Positions 21,892 to 56,186 of a stretch of DNA of 64,000 nucleotides are shown here, in pieces. Every line of letters begins with the position of its first letter. Position 1 is the stretch's first letter. Made by a program: the position numbers and the translations under genes. This DNA is from Adineta vaga (taxonomy: Eukaryota; Animalia; Rotifera): assembly GCA_021613535.1 (NCBI GenBank), contig CP075492.1, forward strand, positions 434,001 through 498,000, written 5' to 3'. A model generated the notes under the pieces. It was not told the origin of the DNA, did no database searches, and saw only the letters and a list, made by a program, of their open reading frames with translations.

Positions 21892-22780
21892 TTAACGTAA
21901 ATTTTCACTTCTTGCATAAGCTATTGAATTTTGTTTTAAAATTCTTTCTTCTGCTTGTTTTGCTTCTTCACAATGAATAACAATAAAATCTTTTGATTCT
22001 GTTTCAAATCGAATAAAATTCTTATCTTTATTATTTTGTATTTTATCAATTATTTTTGCTAGATGTTTAATATTCTTGATTTGAACACCATTGACACATT
22101 TTAATACAGCATATTGAACCTTTGATTCTATTCCATAATTAACATCATCAGCAAGTATTCGATCAATAACAACAATTTCTTGATCTAGTTCTTGTAATTG
22201 ACCATTATCTGCTAAGTTAATTAAATGCTTTGGAGCAGTTTCAAACCAGTCTTCTATAGCCCATGTATGCAAATAAAAGCGAGTTAACACTGTGAATACA
22301 ATTCCAGCATAAATTAAATATTCTGGACGTTTATCATGTGCATGCGATGGAACAAGTGATGGAAGACAGTCAAATAAACTTGTTAATATTAATTCTTTTC
22401 CTAAAAAAATCAACGAAAAAAGTTTTAGATGAAGGAAATACAATGATCTGTTTTCATTCGCAATGCATGAAATTATTCAATTCTTTTTTCTCTAAAGAAT
22501 TCATCAAAATGAAAGACATGTTAGTTGTCACGTCTTTCAATAAGAATTGTTTCGAAGAAAAAAACATCGAATTATGTATTCCTTTGTTTTACATAATTTC
22601 CTAGATTTTTACTAAAATTCTTCATCGCGAATGAATTTTTGACATTCACTTCTTGAGTTGATAAATAACTTTGACGAAAATAAAATATTATTTCGATTAT
22701 TCTGAAAAGTCAAAATCTTATATTTTCTTACCTTGTCTTATAATCTTAAATGTAACTGTTTCACCAACAAATTTAGATAT
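21892..22780 (-). pseudogene. 5'-truncated Deg/HtrA (protease Do-like, Deg2/9/10 type) gene: PDZ regions only
   Basis: SKFVGETVTFKIIRQG spliced to KELILT...PEYLIYAGIVFTVLT...ILADDVNYG...VNGVQIKNIKHLA; no trypsin-like domain found upstream. Confidence 0.7.
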
Positions 22781-23592: not shown

Positions 23593-25409
23593 ATGCTTCT
23601 GCGATTTCTTATTTTATTACTTCTGTTTTCTAATGGTTTATCACAACTTCATGACAAACGTCAGCAGGTGATTCATCAGGTCAGAAATCGTCTTCGGACT
23701 TATGAATCCAACAGTAGAACAATTACAAGTGCTGATACGTTGCAGAATAGCAACAAGATTGGCTTGGGTTATGATCTGCTCGGTGGTTCACCCGTATGTT
23801 ATGAAGGTACATGTCAAATGAATGACTTTAAACGTGCAATTTTTAAACTTAAATTCACAAATTCTGTACTCGGTTCATGTACGGACAAATTAGTCCCGGA
23901 CCATATTGAATTAGATTGTCCTGGAGGAATTGTGAAATCCACCAATACTGAGATTATAGAAACAGTGCAACATGTACACACATCAATTTCTAATAGAGTT
24001 CAACTTTCCATCGGAGCGAAATATAAAGGCGTAGGATTTTCATATACACATTCACGGGAGACTCAATATATGGTAGATAATATTGTTAAAAATTATCAAA
24101 GTTCCCTTGTAAGTTAATATTTATATTTTTAATTAATGTTAATATAAAAATATTGTAGTTTACAACAGCTGAAGTCTCATATATCAAACTATCAATGTTT
24201 GAACCATTTATGGAACTATCTGATGCATTTCGATATGTCATAGAAAATATGCCTTGCTGTGAAGAAAATGATTCGGATATTGAAGAATATGTGAAAAATT
24301 TTATTTTTGATTATTTTTGATTTACTTATGTTAACAGTATACTTTTGGGTGGTATTGCACAACAAACTATTTTTATAAATAGAGAATCAAAAGAACACTT
24401 AGAAATGAATGGAATAAATGTTCAAAATCAAGCAACTCTCTCCTTTGATATGGCCATAGGAGGACATATTAGTACTGGTGTTAGTAATTCAAAAAATGAT
24501 TCTAAACATAATACATTTATGAAAGAAGTGCAGTCACTAAAAATAACTACTCTTGGAGGTGATCCTCATTTAATGAATTTATCTGATTGGTCAAAAACTG
24601 TTGCAACAAATCCTGTCATCATTAAATTTGTTATTAAAGATATCTTCAATCTCTTAAATCAACGTTTCTTTCCAAATGATTTATTGATTAAAAATAAGTC
24701 CAGCTTGATAGAAAAGATATTAGACCAACATTTGTCCAGTTCGATTTATTGTTACAAGAACTGTGGAGATAATGGTACTCGAGGAACTTGTGAACCTACT
24801 GGATATTTTCAGTTTGGTATTTGTAAATGCAAACCAGGATGGACTGGCTCTGATTGTGAAACAATAATAATAGAACCTCCAAAAATATTGCATGGTACTC
24901 TATGTGGATTGGATCGTTCATTTATTCGAGTTACCTGTAACGGTGTGCGTCCATGGAAAGGATGTCCGAAAGGCTGGACTTCTCATGTCTGGAAAACTGA
25001 CTTAACTGTTTGTTATAAGAATCAAACTGAAGTTGGTACTCCTGTTTATGGAACCCTTTGTGGACTTCATTCAAGTCATTCTGCGCCTTACAATTTTGCA
25101 CACGACATAGCTTGTAATGCCACTAGGAATGTGCAGTCAGGCACATGTCCATTAGGATACCATCGTTATGGAGTTAACAGGATCGATAGGACTACATTAC
25201 GATCGCTGATTAAAGCTAACGCTGTATGTGCAATTTTGGATGGAAAAGAACATTTATCAGGAACACTTTGTGGACTTCAAATTCAGGGTACTATCAATGG
25301 TCCCTCTTGTAATGGATTTAATCCTGGTTTGAGTCAATGTCCACCTGAATATTCTTTACAATATACAGCTTTCAATGATTATGGATATTTCGTTTGCGTG
25401 AAAAAATAA
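23593..25409 (+). CDS. Secreted MACPF (perforin-like) protein with EGF-like domain and three GTLCGL repeats; one in-frame TGA at 24318-24320
   Basis: Signal peptide, IGLGYDLLGGSP, intron 24109-24158, YF*FTYVNSILLGG at the MACPF signature position, LGGDP...WSKTVATNP, CKCKPGWTGSDC, then HGTLCGL/YGTLCGL/SGTLCGL. Confidence 0.82.
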
Positions 25410-29957: not shown

Positions 29958-32900
29958 TTAGTGAATTAATGTGGTTGTTTCGACAGTCTTATTTGGATAA
30001 CATCGACCTTTATTCAGTAAAATAACCATGCCACCATATGTTACTCCCATAGCCAGTATGTCTTGATAACCATTACCATTAAAATCAGCGACTTTGGATA
30101 CTACTATACCATCTGTATCTAGAATCGTAGATACTAATTGCGACTGAAAATTTCCTTTTCCATCTCCAATAAAAATAGCCATAGTAAAATAACTATTGTC
30201 AACAGTAGCAATTATGTCTAGATGACCATCACCATTGAGATCACCAATAGAAACTACTGGATATCTAGTAACATTTGCTATGGGAAAAGTGACTTTTGGA
30301 CTCAATGTTCCATTAGCATATCCAAAGAATACAGAGACATTATGATTACCATAAATCTCGCTACCATCAGCATCAGCCAAATAGGTAAAAGCAATGTCAG
30401 GTCGACTGTCACTATTAAAATCGCCAATAGCGAAAAAATATGGACGATAAAAACCTCCAGTAAAATATGTCTGATGCAATTGAAATGATCCATTACCGAA
30501 GCCAAGTGATATACCAATAGTTCTGCTACCATCATTAATGACAGCAATGTCTATGTAACCATCAAGATTAAAGTCACTGACAGAGATCGATTTTGGGTTA
30601 CTATTACGTCCAGTAGAGACTGTCGTTTGAGCTGAAAAACTTCCATTACCATTTCCAAAAAATAAACCAATATTGTTATTATATATATTAGTAACAGCAA
30701 TATCTAAGTGACTGTCACCGTTAAAGTCAGCTGCAGCAATTCCTTCTGCATAACTTCCATATCCTGTTGACCATGTCTTTAATAATCCAAATGTCCCATT
30801 TCCATTTCCAAAGACAACATTCATTGTATTGGCGTATTGATCGGTAAAAGCGAGATCAGGTTTATCATCACTGTTAAAATCTCCAACAACAATTCTACGC
30901 AATATATTAGAGGTTCCTGTTTCAAGTGTCCACCCAACTCTAAATGTTCCATTTCCATTTCCGAGTAATACATTTACAGCATTAGGAGTTGCAGAGAGAT
31001 AAACGACATCAAGTTGACTATCATTGTTGAAATCAGCAACAATGGGTGATCGTCGAATAATAGTATTAGTCATATTTTTTGGATATATCACTATTGAGTC
31101 AAATGTTACATTACAGAACTGAATCTGAAAGGCTAAAGTAGTAAAAACGTATTAGTACTTTATCTGGAACTGATTGGGAAAGAAATTATGCGAGAAAGGG
31201 ATGGTATGAATTTTAATATTTTTAGAATAGTTGTGTGACCCTCTACAATCTATCTGATTGAATTAAATTATCAAATATTAGACTATAGGCACTTGTATTG
31301 ACATCAGAATTAGTACTATAATTTTCCATGCTATAATAAATATTTTCTAATCTCAACTCACGTCGTCAGTACGAAAAATTTTAACTTAATTATAAAGATT
31401 TCCACGGTCAAATAATCATTCGTATTAACAATTTTAAAGGATTGTTTTATCCATTAAGATGTATTGAATGTGATATTAAAAAATTATTTATGGTTAAAAG
31501 ACTCTTTGTATAAACTATGTGTTTGATTTTATATCAAGAGGAGAAATCAAAATGGTCGAGAAAGATTTCACAAAATATTATTAAAATTCTAAGAGAAAGT
31601 CTCATTCTGTAGAAAATAAAACTCTCTTTATGGTTTCTTTTCAGTCGAAAATACAAGTAGTTTCTATGAATTCATTTATTTGAAAGACTAGAGAAATATT
31701 GTATATATACTAACAAGTTGCTGTTGAACTTTTTGTTGATGTTGTTGTTAATGTTGTTGTTGTCATATTTATTTGTGTACTGATACTATTTGTTAAAGTT
31801 GTCGATGATTCTAAAAAAAAATATATATTAGAAATATTCAATTATACACATATCATAAATAGAATATTAAGAAATAGTCAAGATTTACTTTTACATCACC
31901 AAAACAGATTATCGTCGGCAATTAATGATCCATTGTTGAAAGTTTCTCAATCAAATTTTTAATACAAATGTCATTTTCAAAAAATATATTTTCATATAAG
32001 AAGAGTAGTTTTTTTTCTTTCTTCGTTAGAAAACACAAGACAGACGAAATTTAAACGAATGCTGAATTATTTTTATTATCCCAGGTCAAACAATCTTTGC
32101 CGTAGGACTCCGGTGAAATCCGACAGAATAACTATGGCAATTGATAGAAATTCGATCGGAACCGATACTCAGAATCCGACGCAACGATATTCACCTAGGA
32201 TCTTTTAATGCATTTCGTATAAAATCTCTCCCAGAAAACAATCGAGATTATACCCGATTACAATTGCGACTTTGTGGCACAAAAATCTGAATACAATACG
32301 GTATAATCTGCTATTTTTTCCCTGGTATTTGCTAGTCAATATTCATGATGACATCTAGAAAAATAATCATAAAATGATCCTACTTATTGATCCAACTTGA
32401 TTGGTTTTTTGTTGAGCGATATAAATGGAAAATACAATGAGGCCTATTATCACAAATATCATCAGTATGAATCCTAAAAGAGCTTTGAAAGAACATCGAA
32501 TTGATGAAACTAATTTTGTTCTAATAAAAAGAATTATTGATGATGAACAAAATGAAAACAAAGAATTACTGAAATGTTTTATTCACTGGTGTTGATTCAA
32601 TATCACAAGTTGAATTGTGGACATTCATGTTAATATTATCATCAGTCGTGATTTCAATCGAACTATTAGGTTGCACAACATTTATTCTCTTCTTTCGATG
32701 ATGATTTATCTTATCGAGAATTTGAATTATTTTGGGACAAATCAATTTGAGAACAATGGTGAGACCACCATGAAGACTAAGTAGAAGTGTCAAAGTATAC
32801 AGTGGATTAAATTGTTGACTGTATGTATAAGAACACAACAAGGGTAAACATTGTTGATAATAAGATGAATAATTAATTTTTGTTGACCATTCTGCGACAA

Positions 32901-34513
32901 AGAGATTATTTAGAAGTTCAAATACAGTTGCATTTATAGAGAATCCAATCGCTTGTGTTGAGAGAAGAATAGGAGATTTTGTTGAATTGTTAATATTTGT
33001 ATAATTTGTATATTTTTCAATGAGATCAATACATGATCGATCAAAGAAACATTCAAGAGTCGACAGATGAAAAGACTCACTTGGTGTACATCCGATCTTT
33101 AAACCTTTTAAAGGAACAATTTGAGAATAAGCCGCCATATCAATAAAATTTGCTTGACTTGTACAATTTGAATATATTCCACAGAAACAATTATCATCAT
33201 AGGTTAAAGCTTGAGTAGACAGATAAGAACCGAGGGTATACCAACGAGAAATATATACGAAATTGGTTCCATACGTTGACATATAAGCATTTCCATGATT
33301 GATACTTCGAGTTAAGAAAAAGAAATCAGAGAATTTTGTAGGAGTAGTTGATTGCCGCTGTTGAATTAGAAGATCAAGACTTCGATTAAAAGCTGTTTCT
33401 GGTAGAATTTGAGTAGTGATCATTAGTGAAGAAAGAAATTGATTCACAGAATTGTTCACTAATTCAATAGAAAGACGACATAATCCTTGAAGATATTGTA
33501 AATGAGCAGAGAGAAAACGACGATAATCTCTTTGTGAATATGTAGAAAGATTTGCAACGAGACCAGCTGTCAAATTCATTCGCCATTCATCCGAAGAAAA
33601 TGAACTTGAACAGATCTATAATCAATCAAAAAAAGAAAGGAATGAACTTCACTGTCAACTATTTTTCGAAACTTTCACGACGCAACTATTACAAAACGAA
33701 AATTTTCCCAATGAAATCGGCCTAGAATAATGTCTTCTTACCGGATGAAATACTGGTTCAATTTCGACAAATTGATCATATGTCGATGTAATCGATGAAC
33801 ATAAACATTTCAATTCATTTCCATATCGTCGACTGAGTTGATTGTATAAATCGAAAGATGGTTTATTATATATTTTTGTGATAGTTTCAGGTTGAACAAT
33901 GGTAAATAAAGCAAGAATAGTAAAACTGACGAGAAGTAGAACAATGTAAAGACGAGTGGACCATTGACCAAGTTTTGTAGCCCTTCTTCGCTCAATTTTA
34001 CTTCCAAAATCTCGCAAAAGAAATATATTTAAATCAGACAACGCAGTGTATATAAGAGAGAACAAATTTCGAACGGAATTTTTCAATTGATCGGACCATT
34101 TGATGCGAGCTATGAACATAAAAATAAATCTAGTATTCTTCTCCAATCATCAACTAAGCATAAATCTTGAACTATTCAGACAGGGTGCGAGTAAGATGTG
34201 GGTGTTGATATAAAGAATTGACACCCTTACCCACACCCACTCTCAAGATTCTTTCTGGATCACTCATTATGACCTAAGTGAGTCAGAAATGATCCTTTAC
34301 ATTTAAAATATTTATCCCCTTGTGAGATTTCTATATGAAAATTTCATTTAAGAAAACATTTGTAAGTGACTCTTTGGTAGATGCTAAAAGCTAGAGAAGA
34401 CTAATAAAATATATTCTTTCAGATGCTGGTTAAATGGTATATAAAATAGAATTTCCCTATGTAAAAATGATTATTTTCTAATTATGGATAGACAATTGAT
34501 CAACAATTACCCC

Positions 34514-34550
<37 letters not shown>

Positions 34551-37500
34551 TTGTCGTCTTTTATTGATGATTGTTAATAGGAAAATAATAAATTTGACAA
34601 TTTGAGGTGTAATAATACGTAGTGAAACAATCAGACCACCAATCATGGATATCAATGTTAATGTTACTTCAAAAATTGTTTTTGTACGAATTGTTTGAGA
34701 ATAAGTGCAATAACTCGGTGCACAGGATTCATAAAAGCTATTGTATGAACGAGATATATTCCATCTTTCAATCATCATATCTTGAAGTATTGTTTTAATT
34801 GAAATATTCGGAGGAAAACGACTCACTGCTGAGTCATAATTGAGAGGACGTGGATAAAACCACTGTGAATCTAGGACAGTTTCAACATATGTCTGTTCTA
34901 TGAACTTTATTACGCTCGAAAAACAATCAGAACCTGAATAGAAACATTCAAGTGTCGAAAGTTGAAGAGAATCAACAGGAGAACAACCATCGAACGATCC
35001 TGGAACTATATAAGCGATGTTATAGTCGATATCTATAGGGCCAACTTCCTCATTATAGTAGATGGTAACTTGTTCCTGACAATTAGAATTTGTAGCACAA
35101 ATACATTCAATATCAGTCGAATTGATATTCACAGGACCATTGAATGGAAATGACAACTAAAATAAAATGGATCTCTGTATGTTTTTAGTAGTTAATTTGA
35201 AAGAATCATTGTCTACTACAAAGTAAACAATCTTTCTGAATGATAAAATCTAGTAGAATATCGTTCTTATAAAAAGCCTTCTAAAAAGTCTTAATATGAT
35301 GAATTATGATATATGATTATGTAAGTAATTCAATTAGCGAAAATAACGCGCTATATAGTGACCTGCACGTCTGAATATTTTTACAACCTGCAACTTGTCC
35401 TTCGAAACTTTTGGTTACCTAATTGTGCCACGTATACTCTAGAAAAAGATACTTTAACGATCATTCGAAAATGTTCCTAGAAATGTACGTAGTCCAAAAG
35501 GTAAGTTTTCAGATTTTCGAAATCTTTAACGGATGTTTTCTCGAGCACAATCTCGGAGCTTTATAGTACAGGAGCGGATCTAGGAGTTTGGAAGAGGGTG
35601 GGGCGCGATTTCAGCTAAAAACAAGTTTTTGAGGACATTTGAAGTAGTATGATTTATTTTTTCGTTCGATTTCCCTGGGAAAAATCGAAAAATTTTGTCA
35701 TAAGGGGGAGGCGACTGTTCCCATTGTCGCCTTAAATCCGCCACTGTTCTAATACGAAACCTTTTTAAGTTTCATAGAGGAAAACAATTTAATAGTTGAT
35801 ATTTAAGCTGGGAGAAATTATAACAGCCTGTATAAGACATAAACACTGAAAATTCATTTCCATGTTTCAAACTACAATGAAAACTATGGTTATGATTGTC
35901 ATTATTAAACACACTCACGCACGACAATATTCTCAGTTAAGTGTCTTTCATCAGCCTTTAACTTCTTTCTTTTATTAATAAAATGTATAACTAGTTTTAT
36001 TTCAAAAGAACTCTGAAAACGAATATTTAAAGTTAGTAGATATACCTGTACTGGTGGGTAATTTGTCCTGTTTGCAATCGGTATACCACTCATATAATTT
36101 GTCGATTCATTTGAGATTAAATATACCTCAAAACTAGCACCATCAGTCGGCAGTGATGCCATAAAAGGCTGATCAACTTGCAGAAGAAGCTGTGCTGCAT
36201 TGATGGAAAATCCAAAAGAGGTGGTTGTTGATTGGAAAAATTCTTCTAAAGTTGTATTTAATTGTATATTGAAATTGATTTCTGTCAACACACTTGAAGC
36301 AATAAATGCTTGTAGAAGAAGACGATGAACAGCATCATCAACTGTTTTATTAGCCAATCGACAAAGCTCTGATAATAATGAAAATTGTGAGGCAGCTATA
36401 TTACGCCAATCAGTAGTAATCATTGAATTTGTGCCATCTTTCAATATTTTAAGCCAACGATCGTCAATCAAATCACTTGAACAAACTTGATGAAAGACTG
36501 GAGACAATGAGACGAATGTCTGATAAGGTATTATTATAGTTGAACAAGGACATCTGAGAGTATCTGAATACAGAATTTGCAAGTTATTGTAAGTGGTTAA
36601 TGTTGGAGTTAGGACAGTTATTGTAACTGTTTGAGTGCTCAGTGAAGTAAACAGGACAAGAACAATGATTGAACCTAATCATACAAACATAGATATATAT
36701 GTATTAATAAAAACATATTTTTAATAATTCGAATATAGTATGGGATTATACGTTTCTTAATCAGCTTAGTATAGAATTAGTTTTATATATGGGAGATATG
36801 GCTGAATCTAATTTGATTTTAAGTCCAATTTTATATAAACACCAAGAAACGATGAATAATTCGGTTTTTTCATGCAGTTTGTGCTGCTAAGATTCACATT
36901 AGTTGTTCGAGTGCGGCTTAGTTAGATGTTTATCTAAAAACTTCCCAGTTTTAAAAGACTTTCTACTGTGTGAGCAAGGAGCTTTCTTAACTAGATCGGT
37001 GTTTACATTAGACTGTATTCGCGACAAAATTTCATACTATATATGATAGTGTAAGTATCACGATTTTCCTACAAAAATGTCATTTATATCGGACAGGATT
37101 AAGCTAAATACGGTCACTTTAAATGTTGTAATTTTGATTAGCATAATTTACTATCAACATCTATATTCGTTTCTAGGAAAAATCACGTAAATGATGAAAC
37201 CATTTGATTTCGAATTGTAGACTTTTGTTTTTATAAATTAGTTTCAATATACAGATCTTCTAATCAGATAACGATTCTAACACTAGAATCGAAATCTATC
37301 TTTGTCATGTGACATATATTCTGCATCTTTTAAATTTTCAAATTTTCAGCTGATCATCTTCTAGAATTTAGAGTCAGAAAAAAGAGGCTATTGTAAGAAT
37401 ACAAGCTCGGTTTCCACTTTACCAGTACGTCAATGTACTTGATGCACTCTTTGCGATAGAAATAAATGATTTTGAAGTATAAATAAAGAGTAGATCAGTA

Positions 37501-40500
37501 AACTCATACTTTTATCTCTTACGATCGATAATAGTATTGGACAACTACATTTATATGACATTCGTTTATCCATAACAGAATAAAAGCTAATCATGCTTAA
37601 CTAATACATTTTTTTGTCGTTAGAAATCCTATAGAAGTATTCAGTAAAAGTAATCATACCAGCTAGCAAAACAAAATAGATACGTGTGACCATCATCTGT
37701 TGTTTGATACTGCTTTCTGTTCGATCATTAGCCACTTTAAATAAATTGAACCGCTTTAATGATTGAGAAAATCTGTTGAAACATGTGTTTCGAGAAGCTA
37801 TAAATCATGTAAGAAGCCTTAGGGTAACGCTATTTGCATTCTTTTCAATACATACTCAGATCAATATTTATGTTTCTTGAACGACGTTTGATTTTCACCA
37901 AAATTTTGATCAGAAATGGTACAAACAAACGAAATATAATAATGAGACCGCCATAGAGACTTATGAACAAAGTAACTGCATAAGATAAGTTAGTCTGATC
38001 TGTTGTTACGTATGTGCAGTATGATGGAGCACATTTTTTAAAATATTTTAAATAATTCATTTGTGTTGACCAACTCTCGATGAAAAGATTATTGAAATAA
38101 TCGTTCACAGATATATTTTCTTGTTTTGAAGTCAGGACTGAATCAGTCCAATTAATTTCCATCTAAATAAAACGGTTATTTAAATGATTGAACAGTATAT
38201 TATACACACTTGATTAAGAGCAGGAAAGTAGTTGAGCAATAATTGAAGACATATGGTATTGTATAAACAATCGAGTGTGCTTGGAAGAAGACTTTCAAGT
38301 GGACTACATCCTCCAAAAAATCCATCGACAATCGGAGTACCAGGAGAAGGCAAATACGAAAATCTAATGAACGTATATAAATACGTAGATAGATACTCCG
38401 GAAGAGCAGCTGGAGTTATTATATTTCCACTACCACAACTAGTACGAATACTACTCATACCACTAAGTGCGTCGTATGGACTATATGCTGTTGGATATGC
38501 ATAAAAATGAAACTGATTATAAATATTTGCCATTACCATCAGCGCATTTGTATTGAGAGCCGATATTAAGTTATTTGCTTGATTTGCAATTCTGAGATAA
38601 TTCAAAAATGAACTAATTCCAACAGATGCACTGCTTTTAGAGAATTCAACAGCAGCAGTCACTTCCGATTGAATTTGGGCTTCAGGAAGAAGAGATATCG
38701 TGAGGAAATCCTTATCGCCAATATCATTCTGGTTATGCAGAACTATTGATTGGGAAAGTGCACAAAGACTAGACAATAGTTCAAACTAAATCGACAAAAA
38801 AATCAATTAAAATAATTCTCTCTAACGATGGAACGATCCGAGCTGACGTCTCTTGTTTAATCTCATAGTGTAGATAGAAGCTCCAGAAGGATTCATAGCC
38901 AAACCTTGTTGTTGTTGATATATTAGATTCTTAAGATATCGAGACAAATGATTGCAGTGGTCCTTCTCAGATGCATCAAAAAAACTCATTTACAGATTTC
39001 TGCTTGAAACTTTGAATAGAGAGAGAGAGTAGTTTACTGTGAAACTTTCAGCTTTATCGAATGCTCCTAAATACAAATTAGAGTACCAGTACTAACCTCT
39101 GACGTTATAAATTATGATAGCTATATCTTTCAAGAGAAACAGAGAGTTGCTCTGAAACTTTCACAATAAACTACTCTGATGAAGAGTACTTTCTATCTAA
39201 AATTTGAAGCACGAATCCGAAAATAGTTTTTTTTGATGTATCTGAGAAGGACCATCGTAATCAGTTGTCTAGACATCTCAGGAATCCGATCTATCAACAA
39301 CAACAACAGGATTTCACGATGAACCCTTTTCGGACTTCTGTCCACACTTTGAACTCAAGCAGAAATTGCCACTTGAGAAGATTTCTTCATCAGTGTTGAT
39401 CAGGGAAAGGTGAAAAATTAACATTTCTCTCTTGTTTGTTCTTATAATATATCACGCAAGAGCTATTTTGTTTCTCAAAATTTATAAATTCGCCAAAAAA
39501 TAACTAACTTACAGTGAAATTTTCTTAAGAATGTTTCTTAGTAGTTTTTAATCTTGTTTTTTTAACATATAACTCCTATCGAGATTGACGTCAGTCGTGA
39601 TTGATAGATATATTGTGATTCTTTAAGATAATTTATTGTCATAGATTCGATTATAAATATACGCCATTTTTGAAGTTATAAAATAAGAAATTTCTTACCG
39701 AGAGTTATGGAATAACGCGTTCTAAAAACTAAAATAATTTATCTCGTTTTAAATCCTTAGCCTAATACATTCTATTTAATTTTTTTAATGAAAAATAAGG
39801 CTCACACAAGAACAGATATTTGACTTACTTGAGAACTAGCCGACGTTCGAAAATCTGTCATTCCATAATCACTTGCTTTGTCGAAATGCAACGCTGAAAT
39901 CCATTGTTGACTGACGAAAAGACTCGAACAGACAGGATGAAATGTGATTGTATTCGAAACGAAATCTTTATAAGGTATTGCATTTGTCGAACATGGACAT
40001 ATAAGAGTATCAGCGTGATCACGGTAAAGATCATTGAAAACGGCAGAAGTCACTTCTGAGATAGTGACTGTGTGGAATCCTGGTTTCATCAAAGCAGTGT
40101 AGAAAAGTACATAAAGTGACACTAAAAGCAGAGAAAAAGTAATCAAAATTCTGAGAGCATTTTCTTCTCAGTTATTTGTCATTTAACCATATTTTATGTT
40201 TTCCAAAAAATAGTTGAGCTCAAATCTAGTTCAGTCGAAGAATGTACTGCTGAGTCCAAGGGGGAAAAAGCGAAAAATCTGTATTCCAGTGTACTCATTG
40301 TACTCCAACTGGTGCACTATAACACTGGTCACTAGTGAACTTGAAAACACTGAAAAAAATCTCAAGGATAGCTATAATTCATCGAGGGAGTACAATGAGT
40401 ACACTGGAGCACCGACTTTTCGCTTTCTCCCTCTTGGCTGAGTCTAATAAGATGCAAAAAACCAATATAATATGAAAGTCTATTAACAACAAAATCGGAG

Positions 40501-43500
40501 AATAATAAAACACCATTTTCTCTTCATTTGCGTGGAATCAGCAAATAAATTTACTATTTAACAGTTTGAACAGTTGAGTCTTTTTGCTCGTAGACTTTTG
40601 ATTATACAACTTTTAATATGTGTCGAATCTATACTAGATTTTATGTATACGATGGTACGGACGTGGATGTGAATGTCAGTATTTTATATCTACATGCGCA
40701 CTCGCTTATACTCTCTGATTTTTCAAACTTATCTGATTTAAAATGTTTTTAAACGTTAAAAATGGCACAAGGAGTCGGTATCAGTATTTAAAAAAACATC
40801 GACTATTTATTTCTATCTCAATTATCGATAATGCCAAAGCTTTTTCGTACAAATGTTTTGATCAGAAGAGAACATATATGGGGTATTCCATGAGATCTCA
40901 ATCACTCTATCCACAAGTTTCTCTAGATCGCTTGAAATTTTCAGCGTTTGTAGACCCTAGTATCCTAGTAAAATCCTAAGCACCAGTTGTCTAAAATTCC
41001 TCAATACGGAGAAGTAATCAATTATGATATTTCTTTGGATCTTTAGGTAAAATTACGAAAACTTAATTTTTGCGAAAATCATGTTGTTGGAAAATCTCTT
41101 CAATTAGACACATAAAGTAGCAACTATCTCACATATTCTGAAAACTGATGACTTAAGCTACGTTTGGACTATAATATGTTAGTTTTTTCGTAAAAATGTT
41201 GGTTGCATTATCCCTTCATATGTGTTGCTCATTGACCGAAGACTGGAGTATAATTTTATAATAAAAAACTTTGAAAAAAATCTCATTCCTAAAAAGCATA
41301 GGCGGCGCGCCCTATATGCGAAGCGAAGCAATAACTTTCTATTGCTTCGCTTAATTTTTGATATTCTGATAGTTGTTAAAACTATCCCAGTGTATTACAA
41401 AACTTGTTTATGATCTCTGATCTCTGAAAGCACTATTTTACTAAGTGTACCTGACATATATCGTGATCATGGAACTTTAAGTCCGTTTTGATGATATGAA
41501 CGAAAAAATAAAGTCCAATGTTTTCGTCTTCCCTTCTGATACAGAAAGAAAATCTAACGGACTTCTTTCATTTGCTATTGCTCTCATCATTTTTGATTTT
41601 ATAGTTGAGTTCAAATATATTTTAGCATTGGCGGCGCACCACATAGGCGAAAGGGAGACAATTGCCTTCCTGGATATAACCACAAAGAAGGCTCGTCCGA
41701 AAATTCACTCAGCTCTTTCCCACAGTAATAATGTCAAGGGGAAAAGAGCGAAATCCTGATTTTCTGGAATTCTGACTTGTACATAGGGGCGTCAAAAAGT
41801 TCTCGTAACAGTTCTCTAAAATTTCGTTCTAATTGATTTTATTCCTCATATTGGCCTGTTCTAGTAGTGACATCTGTTATGTATTAAAATACCAATACGA
41901 AGTTTCATAAGTGTCTATCATGGCAAATTTTTAAAGAATTTTTTGAACACCTCTATTTTCATTTGGAAAAACAGTGTATACGCTCGTATATAAAAACTCG
42001 TTTATTATTAGGCTTAACAGCTACACAAATTCATAATGAATTAGCTGTTGTGTAAGGCCCAGATGTAGTTTCATATAGTATAGTTACTCAGTGGATTCAA
42101 CGATTTTTAAATAAGCGAGAGTCATTGGAAGATCATCCTCGAAGTGGCCGTCCGTTATCCGGCATCACTCAACAGAATATTGATGGAGCTAAAGACCTGG
42201 TGAATGATGATCCACATATTATTATTGATTATGTTACTGCCATCTTAGACACAGTTAACACATCACTTATTGTGGTGGATACTTGAAGATATTAGTAAAA
42301 AATTTAGATAAGAGAAAATCACCATCAACAGAAGATAGCATAAATTTACATTAAAAAAATGCAGTAGTAAGTATGGAAAATATTGTTCTTCATTTTAATT
42401 ATCTTCAAGAAGAAAAAATCAATGTTATGGCTCATCTACCATATTCACCTGACCTTGCACCTTCAGATTTTTGGTTGTTCAATTATTTGAAATGTGGCCT
42501 TGATACATGCCCAGATGTAATAAGTTTAGCTAAAATGTTATCCAGGGAGCTTCATTCAATACCTATTCACGAATATCAAAAGACATTTCAGAAATGGATT
42601 GAAAGGATGAAACTTTGTATAGAACATCGTGGGGACTACTGCGAATATTTACTGTAAAAAGATTACCAAAATGTTTTTTCTTTGAATAAATATTTGAAAG
42701 TCCGACAATTTATTGACTGACCTATGTAGAATTCGGTGGATTTTATGAGTTTTGGGAAATCCCACAGAGAATTTATGGCAATTCAAGAATCCAGATTCCG
42801 CTCTTTCTCCCTTAAATCATGTCTCCTAACTATCATCAAGCTTTTATTTCATTAAATTTAAAAAATCATGTTAGTTCGAGTTGCTCGGCTTTGACTACCT
42901 TTCTTCAAAGTTTGATGAAAAATAGCTGGATGTCGAAAACTTATTGTTACCGTCTCAAGTGACACGAGGGGTAAATTGCTGGGTCTGCATCGCCCCGATA
43001 ATCTTTGGAACTTTTGCTGTTTTTGCCTGCCAGTCTCACAAGTTTTCTTCAAACTTTTGAAAGTTTTTTTAACTCTGAAAAATCTTCGAAGATTTCCGAA
43101 AAAAATCTGAAAGACGAGTAAAAGCTCTTAAAATGTTTGAATATTTTTAAAATTTTGCAGAAAATTTTGCAACTATCAACGCTCTCTCAGTCTTTCGGGT
43201 TTCGGAACACGACACATTACCGCTGGTTTAAAAAAACTAATTGCTTCCTCTATAAGATTGAGCCTGCGTCGCCCATGCCAAAAAGACCATATATAGAGCT
43301 TTGTAGAGAATTAAATTCACTACAAGATGTATTACATTAGAGCTCCCGCTTTTTCTAACCAAAAACTGCTCAACAAATAGTCTGTTTTTGACATTCCTAG
43401 GATGAGAGAGCAACCATTAGGAGTACTATCTTTACTAAAAGTTATTTCCCCATCTACAGTAATATTATACGGTTCTTAGAGCTTTTAATTCAGAGTTTTT

Positions 43501-46370
43501 TTATATCAAAATATTGCCAGTTATCTTTTGTTCTTATAAAGATATGTTTAAAATACTTTTGATACTAAAAGAAACCTACTTTTCTATGTGATTTTCTTGT
43601 AAAACTGTGTTGACAAATGATTTTTCGCTGTTTTCTCTATGAGAACAAGGTGAAAACTTAAACCCGAAACCATAGTCAGATTCCTTGTGAAAAGGCGCAT
43701 CGAAATAGACTACAATTGTCTTATTTAATGCCGGATATGACGAAAATAATAAGAATCTACGAAAGAAAACAGATGAGAAGTCCTGGTAAAAATCACGGTA
43801 GATACAGTGTAGCTTCGTACTTTAACAGGATTTTGATTTGAACCTGCAAGAGTTTCGTGTTTCCTACGAAGCCATTTTTCGCTGTACGAAACTTTAAAAA
43901 AAGGTTCTGTAGGTGAGGGTTCGACTCGTGAGTTATATGTCGAACGATTAAAGGTTCTGTCCAATTTGTTGTTTTATTTTTTGAGACTTTCGACATGATT
44001 GGAAGCATTGAGACATATCTAGAAACTCTTTTTTTGAAAGTTCAGGAAAACTCCTTGTTTTCAAAATGGTACGCAACTCTCTTCTGAAATAAGGTTAATC
44101 TTAGAAATCGAGTACTGAGTAGTCGAAGCCTGACTTGAAACCGGATCGACCGATCCAGGCTCATCACTTAACCGGCGAAAAACCAGCCGGTTTGAATGTT
44201 TTGCTTTACCGACAAAAACCCGATACACTTCGTGCACCAATTAATCAATCAGCATGGTCGAATAACAGCCTGTTAGTTCAGTTTGACGGAAATATTCGAT
44301 GTCAAAGTCATAATTTGTGTAGTTTTTACTAGTAATAGCTCTCATTTTAGCCCGTCATGGTTCACGTGCCAACATTCAGAGCAAACAAAGGATTCCATCA
44401 GTGTTGTTTCACTGACAAACCACAGAGTTTGATATTAAACAACTTCTAACTATGTTTTGGCTGACATTTTTTCCAGTAGTAATATGGTTTCGTTACAGTT
44501 CACAAATTTGATCTATTTTTATTTGAAGTAACTATTTAATACGGTGGAAAAGTATTCCATCGCCAAAAGGATGATACTCCTAACAAAATGATAAAATGAG
44601 CCGACATGTACTGTCTTCATATTAGACTTCCTATTTAAGACCTCTCAATATCTAAGTATTTTCACAGTTACATGATGGCAGTTGTCAAAACGGTTTCTGC
44701 AATAGAACATAATCATCTTTAATATGTTGGCGTAAAAGCATAGCATAAAATCTATTAACCCTCGTACGGTGTCCTCAATTTTTCACACAGAAGGTGTTGT
44801 GTGGGTCCAGAAGGACCTAAATATAAATAAGTTAAGAAAGCTTGGTTTTTTTGTGTTCTCTGCAATAGATATGATGTATCAAGCCCTATGGTATGTTTTT
44901 ATCGAAACCCGAAGACATTAGTACGGAAGTGATGTATAAAATGATCGATTTTGCATAAATACAACGAAAGACGACAAGAGAAATATTTCGATAAACACAT
45001 AACAAAATCGTCAAAAAAAGATTAAAAAAACAAACGATTCACGATTGGCAGCGTTGTACTAACATATCTATGATAAATAAACTCTCAACATAATAGAAGG
45101 CAGATACTATATAGACGAAAACCATCTGTATAACATAAAAGTTGTCAGGGGGTCCGTGTGGACCCACCCTTCAGTTTTTCAGTGGTAGGACCTATATGTG
45201 AAATTTATTATGGTACTTATACACCGTCAGGGGACTAACGATTAGCGAAACGATGGGTCCGAACAGGATAGATCTTTGTGTAGAAAATATAAAAAAACAG
45301 TGCTGTGGATCCGACCGGACCCACACACAACGAACAACGGTTAACTATCGTCATTCTATTAGAATTAGTCCAAAATTAGTCCTGAAAAATGGCATCAAAA
45401 TTCGCAGATGAACTCTCTATAGTTTCGAGCGATTTTAATTTCTAACATATCAGTAGTTTTCGTGTATATAAAATATTTTATCCGATATACTCGGAAGTGC
45501 TGATCATAGGATCAGAAAATATTAGTGAATCTATAAAGTGGGAATTTTGGCGATGTGTAAAAGTTTATCAATTGGAAACTTCCAGGGACACACCTTTTGA
45601 TCGGTAAACAAAAGTAAACTCCAAAGTGTGTAAACTGAAAATTGGGAATTCACCTACGTTTTCCTGTTTTAAGAAACAATTCTTGACACTGCTGAACTTC
45701 ACTCCGTAAAACAGAACAAAACTACTCATTACCCGGAAGTGAAATTCCCATAAAAGAACAATTGTATTCTGTTTTTGAGAATCACTTCCAGGTTTTGAGT
45801 ACTTTGTTTCGTTTTGGGAACGACACTTCCGTTTTCAAAACATAGCTCTCATGAGGGTGAGGGTATACTTAAGTGGTGTGGTTCAGTAGGTTTATGCAAA
45901 ATATCATAAATTTGAATGCGTAGCTGAGCTCCAAATTTGGGGTTCACTTTTATTGACCCTTTATATCATTGGAAACATGAATATCGCTAAGAACTAGTAA
46001 AACAGGCAAATTTTAGTGCGCTAAAAAGTTTTCAGAAATGAAAAAAGGACCGACAAAATACAGGTGAAGACTGGCCGGTTTGAAAAGTTGGACCGGACTG
46101 GTTCCAGGTCTGCTCGGAGCGTCTTACCTCTACTCATAATGATACTGTGAAGCACCAAATTCTAAAAAAAGAAGTTTCAGCATCCAACTTACTGGTGAGA
46201 AGAAATACATATAACCAAGTACTATATTTTTGATGTTTCAGTTGAATTGCCGGATCTTCTTTTTGATCTTCGTTATCATCATCACTATATTCATTTTCTT
46301 CAGGCATAAATAGATTGTAATCGCTTGTGTACTCATAAAACCAATGGAATAGACCTTTCAGGCGCATCAT
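29958..46370 (-). CDS. 12-exon ~1862-aa membrane protein: three tandem 2-TM Cys-rich modules + TM + Thr-rich stalk + 7-repeat FG-GAP propeller
   Basis: Exons 46370-46193, 40121-39829, 38785-38210, 38162-37856, 37797-37660, 36674-36046, 35156-34511, 34109-33742, 33615-32570, 32520-32384, 31810-31715 and 31132-29958. All introns are GT-AG, all phases are compatible, total 5589 nt. Motifs CxCS, CSS, GCxP, STL(E/D)C, CxPxxCxY and GGL recur three times. Confidence 0.85.
34512..34553 (-). repeat. CAA microsatellite encoding poly-Gln in the linker between modules 2 and 3
   Basis: (ttg)n on the plus strand; QQQQQQQHQQQQQ in the translation. Confidence 0.9.
35569..35746. mobile_element. Intronic hAT-type MITE
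   Basis: caggagcggatctagg ... ccttaaatccgccactg; flanks ttatagta / ttctaata (6/8). Confidence 0.65.
38880..39335. mobile_element. Intronic foldback/MITE
   Basis: ttgttgttgttgata...tggtccttctcagatgcatcaaaaaaac pairs with gttttttttgatgtatctgagaaggacca...tatcaacaacaacaa. Confidence 0.7.
40257..40436. mobile_element. CAAGGGG-family hAT MITE with a perfect 8-bp TSD
   Basis: GCTGAGTC|caagggggaaaaagcgaaaa ... ttttcgctttctccctcttg|GCTGAGTC. Confidence 0.9.
41735..42814. mobile_element. CAAGGGG-family hAT MITE carrying a nested mariner
   Basis: caaggggaaaagagcg ... cgctctttctccctta; flanks aataatgt / aatcatgt (7/8). Confidence 0.8.
41782..42726 (+). mobile_element. Internally deleted mariner transposon (transposase pseudogene)
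   Basis: TA|catagg..gtcaa.aa TIRs|TA; HTH remnant IRSYIKTRLLLGLTATQIHNEL...LEDHPRSGRP with a stop; HLPYSPDLAPSDFWLF at 42373-42657. Confidence 0.88.
44759..45340. mobile_element. piggyBac-type MITE
   Basis: TTAA|ccctcgtacggtgt ... acaacgaacaacgg|TTAA; internal repeated GGGTCC-N-GGACCC palindromes. Confidence 0.7.
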
Positions 46371-46785: not shown

Positions 46786-48705
46786 ATGGAAATATTGACT
46801 AGATTGTATAAGAAGCAACTTCACCATGGAGATCGGTACCCTGTGATCTCTATGCCGGTCACAAGCCCGGACAAACGAGGAGCGTTAGACGGAAGGGCTG
46901 CAGATACCGCCGTCTGTAAAAAGAAAAGACGAAAGAAACTAACCATGAACGACTTTAGCACGAAACCATACCGGCTCGAACGTCGCCCGGGAAAACAAGG
47001 TCCGCGTCCTCTGTCGAGTGACCAGGGCAGAGTCGGAAAATTGACTACTGGAAAGAACTCACATTTGAAATACGCGACAAAAAATACGCAAATACTCACA
47101 CCTGCCAAAAATAATCTGACAATAGGAACATGGAACGTGCAGACCCTTTGGGCTCCAGGAAAACTGAAATTACTTAGAAATGAAATGAAACGTTTCAAAT
47201 ATGACATCATTAGAATTTCTGAAGTGCGATGGACAGGAAAAGTGGAAACACTAAATGGTGATTTCATCTGGTCCAGGGAAGAGACCTTACATATGAAGGG
47301 TGTAGTTTTCTTACTGAGCGCACGGGCTAAAAAGGCTTTAATAGGATATAATCTAACAAGCTCACGAATCATTTCGGCGCGATTCGATGCTACTCCATTT
47401 AAAATCTCAGTCATACATGTATATGCACCAACTTCTGCATCGTCAGAAGAGGACATTGAAGCATTCTATAGCGATATTGAGGAAGTAATAACAAAGACAG
47501 ATAAGAAAGATGTAATCATTTTGACAGGAGATTGGAATGCAAAAATTGGTAATGATAATACAGATTGGGAATCCATTATGGGTAAATACGGTTATAGCGA
47601 CAGAAACGAACGCGAAGAATGCCTTCTAGAATTTGCAATATTGCACAGTTTCTACATATGTAACACAAGGTTTCAACATAAACCTAGTCGAAAATAGACT
47701 TGGGCGTCACCAGATGGCATCCACAAGAACATGATTGATCTGATTCTCATTCAAAGAAGATGGAAGACGTCGGTCATCAACTGTAGAACATTTCAGAGCG
47801 CAGACATAAGCTGAGATCACTAACTAGTCGTATATAACATCAAACTGCGACTCAAGAAAATGTTTAAAAAGCCGCAACAATCTTATACAGTTGATGTAAA
47901 CCCATTGAAAGATAAGAAAATAAGACAATCATACAGTACTACACTAATAAAAAACATAGAAAACGTAGAGCCAGCATGTAAATTGGAAGTCCATTCAAAT
48001 AAACTAAAACAGGCAATTCAAAATACAGTAGAGGCAACGATACCTGCAAAAAGAAAAACTAGGAAACCGTTGATTTCCAAAGTGACACTAAAACTTGCTG
48101 ATGAAAAACGTTTCCATAGAATACACAGCAATGCAAAGACTCATGTCGGAGAATCCAGAAATCCGCAAGACAGGACAAAGAACATTGGATACGAGACCAT
48201 TGTGAACAAGCTGAAAAAGGTCTAAACATTGGAAATACCAAAGAAGCATACAGCCTATTAAAAATGTTGAAAAAGGATTTTGACCTCGATTAAGTGCCAT
48301 ACGAAACAAAGAGGGTACGATGTCACAGTCAAAGGAAGATATAAAACAAAGATGGACACAATATTGTAGTAGTCTGTATAAAGATTCTGGTGGGGGAGAC
48401 AGGATGGTAAAAGAACCGAAAGAAGGAGATCTCAGCAAATGCTCGAACTACCGAACGATCTCTCTTATCAATCATACACGAAAAGTACTCTTAATAGTAC
48501 TACTAAATCGATTGAAAAACCAGCTGGATCCGTAACTCTCGGAAGAGCAGGCAGGATTCCGGAAAAACAGGAGCACCGTACATCAAATTCCGATACTAAG
48601 ATTATTGGCTGAAAAGGCAAAAAGACAGGGGAAAAGAATATATAATTGTTTCATAGACTTTCAAAAAGCATTCGATACGATTAAACATAAAATCATCTGG
48701 GTGTG
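46786..48705 (+). mobile_element. Degraded non-LTR retrotransposon (RTE-like LINE): APE endonuclease and partial reverse transcriptase
   Basis: IGTWNVQTL, SEVRW, VYAPT, GDWNAKIG, IDLIL; then YRTISLINH, QAGFRKNRST and FIDFQKAFD; several stops and frameshifts; 3' truncated. Confidence 0.9.
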
Positions 48706-53969: not shown

Positions 53970-56186
53970 CCCTTTCACTCCTGGTGGGATATATATTTCC
54001 CACCTAGTGAGAATTTATATTTCTCAAAGAATTTCGAAATTATTCGAGGTTTTTAAGATTTAGAAGGAATATTTTCATCTTTTATTCGTAGTTAGGATAT
54101 ATTTTGGAAGGTTTGCATAGATATTTTATGAATCTAATAACGTAGTTTGTCGTGTTTCTTTGATTTCACGCGGTTTTACTAAATATTCTATAGTTTATAC
54201 ATGGAAACAGTTATTCTATTCGTTGTTTTCGTGATAAAAGAATATACTATCACTATGCCATACTACAGCGACCTCTATAAATTACACTTTATGAATATCA
54301 GTAATTGGATAATTCTATTCGCAAATAAAACCAGCGGTGTAATATCCGAGCTTTGAATATTCTCAAAAACCTAACTGTTTTCTCAAGTATAATGGATTCA
54401 GATTCTGATGAAAGATTTTCCGATGGAAATGAAAGTGAGCTTGGTTCTGAAGAGCTTGAAAATAGTAGTTCTGATGATAATGAATCATTAATCGACGAGC
54501 TCGATCAAATTCCAGTAACAGATTGGAAATGGAAAGGTGATCACTCAAACTTTTCTACCAGTTTCAATTATTTTCATGGACATGCATTAGGAAATCAATC
54601 AATTCAACCAATAGATTCATTTTTCAAGTTTATGTCGCAAGATTTGATCAAGTTATTTGTCGACCAGACGAACATTTATGGAAAGCAACGTTGTGTTGCA
54701 AAAGGTGAAGATGAAACGAAATGAAAAGAAATTGATGAAAATGAAATACATGCATTTCTTGGCATATTATTGATTATGGGATTTCACAAGTTACCAAGAA
54801 TAGAAGATTATTGGAGTAAAGATAAAAATTTGTTTACACCAGCTGTTGCTGATACAATGACAAGAGACGAATTTCAACGACTTTTTTCCAACATTCATCT
54901 TGCTGATAATTCGAAAATGCCATCGAAAAACTCTTCTAACTATGATAAAATGTATAAAGTAAATGATTTTCTTAATATTTTGAAAAGAAATTTCCAGAGA
55001 AACTATTCACTTGGATCATGCATTTCCATCGATGAGGCGATGATAAAGTTCAAGGGTAGATCTAGTATAAAACAGTACCAGCCAATGAAACCAACTAAGA
55101 GAGGATATAAGGTATGGGTGTTAGCAGAATCGAGTACGGGGTATGTCTATAACTTTGAAATTTATACAGGAAAGACTACTGAACGATATTTGTCATTAGG
55201 AGAGCATGTAGTTTTATCGTTGATAGATGGAATAGATTTGAAGAATCGTCAATTATTTTTTGATAATTATTTTACCTCTTTAGTGTTACTTTACAAGCTA
55301 AGAAAAAAAAATATATCAGCTACCGGTACAATTCGATCCAATAGAAAATATTTCCCAATTGAACTGAAAAAAAATGATACATTGGAGAGAGGAGATTTTC
55401 GGTTCCTATCAGCAAACGGAATATCTGTGATAAAATGGATGGATAAGAAAGAAGTTCTAGTCGCATCAAATTACTTTGATCCAAAAGAATCAAGTGAAGT
55501 TACTCGACGCTGTAAGGATGGTAGTAGACAAAAAATTTCTTCTCCATTAGCAATTGTTGAATACAATAAAAACATGGGAGGAGTCGATCTATCAGATCAA
55601 AAAATAAAGTATTATACAATTGATCGAAAGTCGAAAAGAAATTGGATGAGAATATTTTTTCATTTTCTTGGTACATCAATAGTGAATTCATTTATCTATT
55701 ATAAAGATCTTTGTGGTAGTAGTAATATTAGTACAGTAAATTATATATCGTGTATTAGCACTGCATTAATAGGTAACTATTGCGGTAGAAAAAGAATAGG
55801 AAGACCTTCGGCAAGGAATAGTCAAAAGAGAATTCGCATCGAGGAAAGCAGTAGTGATTTGGAAGATTCTGAAAAAGTACGATTGTCAGCTCATTTGCCA
55901 GATGTTATTCCAACTTACCGTAGATGCGCTTATTGTAGTACAAAAGAAAAAGAAAAAAGAACGAATGTAATATGCATTTTTTGTGGTGTTTGTCTTTGTG
56001 TGAAAAAATGTTTTTCTTTGTATCATCAAAACTTTGTGTATCAACAATAAACTAAACACACGCGTACTCATAAAAAAACACAGTTTTTGCTATAACTTCA
56101 CCAGCAGTACCAGAATACTGCTGAGTCACTTACTACCATGTTTCTTCAAACATAAATCACATAAAAAAAAGTCAGGAGTCAAAGGG
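53970..56186 (+). mobile_element. Full-length piggyBac transposon
   Basis: TTAA|CCCTTTCACTCCTG ... CAGGAGTCAAAGGG|TTAA. Confidence 0.95.
54392..56050 (+). pseudogene. piggyBac (PGBD4-like) transposase with a single nonsense codon at 54722-54724
   Basis: Acidic N-terminus, SIDEAMI, FDNYFTS, MGGVDLSDQ and C-terminal Cys-rich domain; the two ORFs are in the same frame, with TGA where Trp is expected. Confidence 0.9.

Follow-up and report, generated by a model that had tools for sequence, protein, structure and literature searches.

Three two-transmembrane modules in one chain: a subtelomeric gene of Adineta vaga and its bdelloid protein family

Channels of the DEG/ENaC/ASIC and P2X families are trimeric as a rule, and the second membrane helix of ASICs carries the GAS motif, a selectivity tract. 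In K2P, two-pore, and Nav/Cav channels, internal repeats replace subunits, and the number of repeats is set by the symmetry of the assembly. To our knowledge, a natural chain with three repeats of a unit with two transmembrane (TM) helices is not among the known families. The gene analyzed here, which very probably encodes a single chain of this three-module design, lies in a 64,000-nucleotide (nt) stretch of the genome of the rotifer Adineta vaga (assembly GCA_021613535.1, contig CP075492.1, positions 434,001 to 498,000 of the forward strand). This stretch, referred to as the window, is 434-498 kb from the contig end. The locus is an intact, spliced bdelloid rotifer gene in a subtelomeric chromosome region; it runs on the minus strand from 46370 to 29958 and encodes an 1862-amino-acid (aa) membrane protein. 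An earlier note, made from the sequence letters, had read the product as one chain with exactly three Cys-rich modules of two TM helices each, and this was borne out in the window gene and in an intronless paralogue.

The gene and its three modules

The window product contains three homologous, diverged hairpin modules, N-in/C-in in the membrane and separated by short cytoplasmic linkers. Each module consists of a cytoplasmic LNxF...TRxY lead-in, a first helix (TM1), an ectodomain of ~330-400 aa with ~12 conserved cysteines, and a second helix (TM2) with a GLxGGL motif. The ectodomain framework is invariant or nearly so: C-P-C, H-x-x-C-S-S, C146, C-x-C...C, G-C...S-T-L-E-C...C, and W...C-x-P-x-x-C-x-Y. 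All the motifs that had been listed for a module occurring three times were found in the three window modules and are also the consensus of the family, the TM2 versions being SLYGGL, SMIGGL, and SLHGGL. In module 1, a single Cys replaces the CxC...C trio, and the same is true of its counterpart in P0124 (CAF1042277, 1824 aa), a homologue from Adineta steineri. Basic residues lie beside the cytoplasmic ends of both helices, and cysteines and NxS/T sequons are concentrated in the loops. This means that each module is N-in/C-in, that the three together make six TM passes, and that a seventh helix puts what follows on the outside. The product is thus a seven-pass glycoprotein, in which the seventh TM helix is followed by a Thr-rich stalk and then by an FG-GAP propeller of seven blades, both extracellular.

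Conservation was scored over 110 modules cut from relatives, with a mean identity of 24%. TM2 was the most conserved part (2.19 bits), followed by TM1 (1.90 bits), compared to 1.52 bits overall. The loop/beta region at 209-277 reached 1.23 bits and the cytoplasmic tail 0.62 bits. G378/G379 and T29/R30 are near-invariant. In the TM2 consensus, YIxTxLIGLxGGLxxxL, T371, G375, and G378/G379 fall on one helical face and L376, L380, and L384 on the next, a pattern that would be expected of a helix buried between neighbors. The cytoplasmic parts are short and, except for LNxF...TRxY, poorly conserved, and no signaling domain is present in them.

The gene has 12 exons totaling 5589 nt, or 1862 codons plus a stop, with no internal stops. 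With the borders read in the DNA, 11 of 11 introns are GT-AG and the phases match at each of the 11 junctions; the earlier reading of twelve in-phase exons encoding 1862 aa therefore stands. A hydropathy scan found seven hydrophobic segments, the number of TM helices that had been expected. Two of the TM1 helices are divided between exons. For instance, the exon 1 donor CCA|GTAAGT (phase 1) pairs with TTTTAG|TG at 40121 to give a 20-residue TM1, the same length as in the homologue. The region is AT-rich, with a GC content of ~31-36%. The parts of the gene are as follows, all on the minus strand, with the basis for each in parentheses.

46193..46370: exon 1, start codon, cytoplasmic lead-in (YNLF), and first half of module 1 TM1 (46% identity to P0124 residues 1-55)
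40122..46192: intron 1, 6.07 kb, with dispersed repeats, mariner-like open reading frame (ORF) remnants, and inverted pairs resembling miniature inverted-repeat transposable elements (MITEs) (genome copies 66-92% identical)
39829..40121: exon 2, second half of module 1 TM1, CPCS, and HPVCSS (DNA borders, P0124 colinearity)
38210..38785: exon 3, module 1 ectodomain core with a long helical hairpin, GGCSPLESLLPSTLDC (DNA borders, P0124 colinearity)
37856..38162: exon 4, end of module 1 ectodomain (W..Y..F..C.P..C.Y) and TM2 with SLYGGL (~37988-37932) (donor 37856 in a spliced contig)
37660..37797: exon 5, cytoplasmic linker, FNLF...TRIY lead-in, and first part of module 2 TM1 (both borders in spliced contigs)
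36046..36674: exon 6, rest of TM1 and N-terminal half of module 2 ectodomain (RCPCS, HQVCSS) (spliced contig, P0124 colinearity)
34511..35156: exon 7, C-terminal half of module 2 ectodomain, TM2 with SMIGGL (~34676-34620), and cytoplasmic poly-Q (DNA borders, P0124 colinearity)
33742..34109: exon 8, LNIF...TRLY lead-in, module 3 TM1 (~33951-33895), and KCLCSS (DNA borders, hydropathy)
32570..33615: exon 9, most of module 3 ectodomain, with 12 Cys and 13 N-glycosylation sequons (pieces covered by RNA-like contigs)
within 32570..33615: remainder of exon 9, TM2 with SLHGGL (~32793-32737) and then a basic cytoplasmic tail
32384..32520: exon 10, seventh TM helix (~32480-32424), taking the chain back to the outside (segment also in the relatives P0040 and P0125)
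31715..31810: exon 11, Thr/Ser-rich stalk (DNA borders)
29958..31132: exon 12, FG-GAP/VCBS beta-propeller with seven D-x-N-x-D-x-x-x-D-type loops, and stop codon (Pfam match)

A poly-Q tract (RRQQQQQQQHQQQQQR, a CAA/CAG repeat) at window 34508-34571, the end of exon 7, lies in the cytoplasmic linker between modules 2 and 3, and in P0053, a relative from A. vaga, a poly-Q run occupies the matching place.

Evidence for splicing came from Logan contigs mapped to 32560-38300, taken from one DNA run and from three small runs assumed to be RNA. Record 5 of run X1 joins 37856 to 37797, with intron 4 removed, and in record 16 of run X8, 37658 is followed directly by 36672, so that intron 5 is absent, its borders displaced by two ambiguous bases (G|GT...AG|GT). 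X3, the DNA run, continues unbroken through both intron sites. A single spliced message therefore extends from the end of module 1 through the linker to the start of module 2. Three exons that were missing from the ORF track are also genuine, the 37797 acceptor and the 37660/36674 junction both being seen in spliced contigs. The remaining RNA-like pieces all fall within exons 4, 5, 6, and 9. The RNA check of the junctions succeeded for introns 4 and 5 and had zero coverage at junctions 1-2 and 7-8 (module 2 to 3), which are based on splice-site phase and homologue colinearity. In a separate observation, run X2, labeled organism B, contains exon 9 pieces (window 32905-33408) identical to the window; either its label or its sample composition merits a check.

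The homologues follow the same order. In a tblastn comparison with P0124, the larger coding blocks were all matched, in order, at 33-52% identity, whereas exons 10 and 11, the two shortest, went unmatched. Like the window gene, P0124 and P0125 (CAF1524757, from A. ricciae) have the N-terminus, three modules, seventh TM helix, Thr/Ser stalk, and C-terminal FG-GAP domain. At this level of identity per block, they are orthologues or close paralogues of the window gene rather than the same gene. The possibility that the modules are separate genes is rejected for modules 1 and 2 by the spliced contigs and for the family by the intronless three-module ORF described below.

Exon 12 matches PF13517 (E 8.6e-50, six stretches) and PF01839 (E 4.4e-26), and seven DFN.D...D-type loops are readable in its translation. 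Of 10 long relatives examined, 9 have an FG-GAP propeller as their C-terminal extension, one of them together with NHL repeats; the propeller is absent from most family members. A general remark in the literature (PMC3846280) notes the expansion of repeat families, FG-GAP among them, in A. vaga. Elsewhere in the window, at 2188-4347 on the minus strand, a 719-aa ORF consists almost entirely of FG-GAP repeats (PF13517, E 6e-80, 12 stretches). It is roughly double the exon 12 propeller in size, and tblastn of P0124 in the window found no 2-TM modules beside it.

The family and its predicted fold

A HMMER search with exon 9 found 2072 representative clusters (50% identity) at E <= 0.001, with a best E-value of 8.7e-182 against database proteins. 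Most full-length matches have three matched stretches and are either ~1200-1300 aa long or, with a C-terminal extension, 1700-2250 aa. The named matches are from bdelloids only: Adineta vaga, A. steineri, A. ricciae, Rotaria species, and Philodina roseola. Their record labels are "unnamed," "uncharacterized," or "transmembrane protein," with one "telomere-associated protein," P0240 (ARX11414, Philodina roseola). The latter name seems to refer to a telomeric location rather than a tested role; no paper explaining it was found. Neighbors in the ESM Atlas are rotifer clusters without Pfam families, and literature searches found no description of the family. A module profile run over 100,824,805 bases in six contigs of the window's own genome gave at least 1272 first-look candidates, 101 of which were scored, giving 109 matches. 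Judging from their coordinates, most of the scored matches lie toward both ends of each contig.

The number of modules appears to be fixed at three across the family. None of 378 relatives has more, and summed profile coverage peaks at 2.85 module lengths. Apparent two-module proteins longer than 800 aa have a coverage of 2.1-2.7 module lengths, which means that their third module is either split by an insertion or lost from a truncated model. Every sufficiently complete member has three modules. The survey of homologues for module number, on which the earlier note had staked part of its case, therefore points to a family-wide constraint. A good example is the intronless paralogue at G000:C2:1012943-1016713 (locus L001 944-4714), a single, uninterrupted ORF of 1256 aa that contains three complete modules with six hydrophobic helices, which makes the one-chain design independent of any splicing inference. 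This 1256-aa paralogue would also be a convenient construct for expression and structure work.

Modules within a protein are typically 19-33% identical, and 5 of 35 proteins have at least one pair at 45-65%. In P0166, P0240, P0184, and P0174, at least one pair is 59-65% identical, and in P0166 and P0240 all three pairs are. A FastTree tree of the modules required 14-18 label changes per module position and showed no clean clades by position. Neither these label changes nor the 59-65% identical modules support a single ancient triplication that left clean m1, m2, and m3 clades. The sequences suggest instead that modules were repeatedly homogenized, as by gene conversion, or re-triplicated, with the count kept at three.

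The fold was modeled with AlphaFold2 (AF2) on homologues. To represent one module, P0021 (430 aa; 56% identity to exon 9) was modeled with the alignment of 110 modules, giving a predicted local distance difference test (pLDDT) score of 92.0 and a predicted template modeling (pTM) score of 0.79. The model begins with a long TM1 helix, a small beta/alpha unit with CxC, and a hairpin of two 30-35-residue helices, and continues with a beta-rich region, two membrane-proximal beta hairpins, and a long TM2 helix. Residues 1-1200 of the three-module homologue P0192, modeled with an alignment of 46 sequences, gave a pLDDT of 84.9 and a pTM of 0.79. A pTM of this size over 1200 residues implies a defined mutual arrangement of the three modules. 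When modules 1 and 3 of P0192 were run as separate chains, the ipSAE interface score was 0.59, compared to 0.00 for the best control, contacts agreed at >=83% between pair runs, and the partner pLDDT was >=78, a result classed as "weak support." The mark of this test is passed by 51 of 78 solved complexes and by 2 of 108 mismatched pairs; scores of <=0.60 include only 5 of the 78 solved complexes but all 4 mismatches that passed.

No known relative of the module was detected. As the earlier note had said of a module without a named family, Pfam has none for the window module exons or, even at E up to 1, for the 110 modules, and the module profile had no match among PDB sequences. Foldseek against PDB with the module model gave nothing at E <1, the whole module having been searched and the ectodomain not folded alone. 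The top 50 VIA-align matches reach only the TM hairpin, and the Foldseek and VIA-align matches span 50-97 residues. ASIC, ENaC, and P2X chains were absent from the Foldseek, VIA-align, and Atlas shape lists, and the ASIC-type ectodomain fold of palm, thumb, finger, and knuckle was unmatched in Foldseek and VIA-align, in which the ectodomain was not searched alone. Foldseek rows to Nav/Cav were noise (TM-score 0.05-0.06). A relation to viral glycoproteins or fusogens was rejected because Foldseek against BFVD also found nothing at E <1. In the Atlas shape search, rotifer clusters came first, with TM-scores of 0.75-0.78, followed by ERV, Wzz, and CD36 at 0.23-0.33 by query, which is not the same fold. 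Provisionally, then, the module appears to be a confidently predicted fold without a detectable known relative, the ectodomain not having been searched alone.

Surroundings of the gene

An ORF and domain scan showed that the window is rich in transposable elements (TEs). An APE-type endonuclease ORF of a retroelement without long terminal repeats lies at window 46786-47697 on the plus strand, ~400 bp upstream of the start codon. Further TE ORFs are at 54770-56050 (plus) and 56193-56951 (minus), a piggyBac-like DDE transposase (PF13843, E 6e-76) and a DUF4371 (hAT-like) remnant. The TE-filled introns described earlier were seen in intron 1, where dispersed repeats that recur many times across the genome are present. 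One segment of it, 40296-40443 (~150 bp), has many 83-92% identical genome copies, often as close inverted pairs ~100 bp apart, and looks MITE- or foldback-like; mariner-like ORF remnants are found at 42125-42657. Two other ORFs in the window also had domain matches. At 24345-25409 on the plus strand, an ORF with a partial MAC/perforin domain (PF01823, E 2e-10) may be a fragment of a pore-forming protein gene, and at 21892-22443 on the minus strand, a 183-aa ORF with a strong PDZ_3 match (PF17815, E 1e-41) is probably one exon of a larger gene.

Possible function and comparison with known systems

In the mechanism that we propose, the three hairpins would form a compact six-helix membrane bundle with a three-part ectodomain crown, most simply a closed, pseudo-three-fold ring with TM2 buried centrally. 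Closure after exactly three units would be the simplest reason for the fixed module number, and a like-with-like interface between membrane units of the same topology would imply rotation about the membrane normal. The variable ectodomain, plus the propeller in this subfamily, would bind external ligands, and the conserved TM bundle would be the working output because there is almost no cytoplasmic domain to signal through. The protein would then be an ionotropic, ligand-gated-channel-like sensor that resembles ASIC/P2X in action and is unrelated by descent, with a possible role in a diversified chemosensory or non-self recognition repertoire. By analogy, a big variable ectodomain on a conserved helix bundle, with little inside the cell, is the layout of ASIC/P2X-type channels, and hundreds of diverged subtelomeric paralogues are consistent with a chemosensory or recognition repertoire. 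The parts of this proposal differ in strength. The closed pseudo-trimer has slightly better than even prospects. The account as a whole, including the ligand-gated-channel-like sensor, is our best explanation and is offered tentatively, at somewhat below even likelihood. Ion conduction, by a sensor that works like ASIC/P2X without kinship, is a real possibility at less than even likelihood. The widest version is unlikely: a natural single-chain, pseudo-heterotrimeric ligand-gated channel of unseen fold, found only in bdelloids and serving through hundreds of subtelomeric genes as their main ionotropic chemosensory or non-self repertoire, with the FG-GAP subfamily using its tethered propeller as a second ligand-capturing domain.

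Several observations weigh against this reading. First, conserved acidic or selectivity-type residues are absent from the TM helices of the 110 modules, and the GLxGGL face resembles a tight helix-packing motif as much as a pore lining. Second, there was no sequence or fold similarity to any known channel in Pfam, PDB, Foldseek, or VIA-align. Third, the models were made from the homologues P0021 and P0192 rather than the window's own chain, and the pTM of 0.79 is equally compatible with a row of modules as with a ring. The pair test, besides being weak, leaves ring and row undistinguished, and in it a cousin module can substitute for the true neighbor. Finally, the RNA support is thin, consisting of a few contigs of low depth whose source runs were only guessed to be RNA, with junctions 7-8 and 1-2 uncovered.

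The rival that survives best is a non-conducting surface glycoprotein for recognition or adhesion, which we consider a real possibility at less than even likelihood. Here, the modules and propeller would bind ligands, matrix, or cells, the helices would be a structured anchor or a platform for partners, as in tetraspanins or CD36-type receptors, and the expansion of the family would represent diversified binding specificities. Propellers of the integrin-type FG-GAP and NHL kinds typically serve in binding. The ectodomains are large, glycosylated, and rich in disulfides, with the loop/beta region at 209-277 as their least conserved part, and the family is large and sited toward chromosome ends. 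The negative searches for channel similarity and the small-residue GLxGGL face, which suits tight helix packing, also fit such a protein. However, the TM helices are the most conserved parts of modules that are only ~24% identical on average, which is unusual for mere anchors, and the short cytoplasmic parts, poorly conserved outside LNxF...TRxY, offer no evident signaling route. Furthermore, a module number kept strictly at three suggests that the unit is functionally closed and not a binder built like beads on a string.

Very unlikely is a decaying or mis-joined subtelomeric copy, in which the pieces are not all parts of one message and exon 1, for example, is foreign. The surroundings are TE-rich, the 6-kb repeat-filled intron 1 is unusual for this genome, and RNA-like coverage is very low, with none at junctions 1-2 and 7-8. 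Yet all exons are open and retain all of the conserved cysteines and motifs, the phases fit at 11 of 11 junctions, and the two junctions linking modules 1 and 2 were seen spliced. The order and the N-terminus also match P0124 and P0125, and intronless paralogues show the one-chain design. Least probable, to the point of near exclusion, is a true but very diverged DEG/ENaC/ASIC or P2X member with three fused subunits: the topology agrees (a Cys-rich ectodomain between two TM helices, with the N- and C-terminal ends in the cytoplasm, by AF2, hydropathy, and the placement of charges, Cys, and sequons) and TM2 has a Gly-Gly pair, but 0 of 110 modules match PF00858 or PF00864 at E up to 1, the window exons have no PF00858 match, no PDB sequence was found, Foldseek and VIA-align matched only 50-97 residues of a helical hairpin and no ASIC, ENaC, or P2X chain, and the mid-ectodomain hairpin of 30-35-residue helices is unlike a beta-rich palm and body. 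The kinship with these channels that the earlier note had considered thus failed in profile, sequence, and whole-module fold searches alike and is rejected.

If the proposed sensor is real, the family would be a whole class of multi-pass membrane proteins, each a single chain with a fixed set of three repeats of a new ectodomain fold, present in hundreds of copies per genome in animals noted for their odd genome biology. It would illustrate how the subunits of a three-fold membrane assembly have been fused in nature, and it could supply the sensory or recognition receptors still missing for rotifers. The three-module family has no name, no Pfam entry, and no paper that we could find, and its confidently modeled members are targets for cryo-electron microscopy and electrophysiology. 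For annotation, the lesson is that long TE-filled introns conceal intact genes in bdelloid subtelomeres.

Compared to described systems, the closest likeness is to ASIC/ENaC/DEG, P2X, and PAC/TMEM206 channels, which share two TM helices per unit, a disulfide-rich glycosylated ectodomain, short cytoplasmic ends, three units, and Gly in TM2. ASIC/ENaC/DEG and P2X differ in that there is no sequence or fold similarity to them and in that the three units of the window family are fused and, in most members, diverged to 19-33% identity. The ectodomain of the window family, known here from sequence and models, also contains a long helical hairpin, and no G-x-S (GAS)-type selectivity tract is present in its TM2 consensus. 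ERGIC/ERV41-46, the Wzz/PCP co-polymerases, and CD36/LIMP-2 are likewise hairpins in topology, and the outer domain of Wzz, too, contains long helices; at their low TM-scores, the models suggest a different fold or no detectable relation. The propeller is like those of the FG-GAP/VCBS type at the N-terminus of integrin alpha, with a strong match, seven repeats, and Ca-binding-type DxNxDxxxD loops. In integrin alpha, the propeller sits on the integrin leg, whereas in the window protein it is carried by its own TM helix and Thr-rich stalk at the C-terminus of a six-TM body. Finally, K2P, two-pore, and Nav/Cav channels have two or four repeats of P-loop or 6-TM units, compared to the three 2-TM units of the chain described here.

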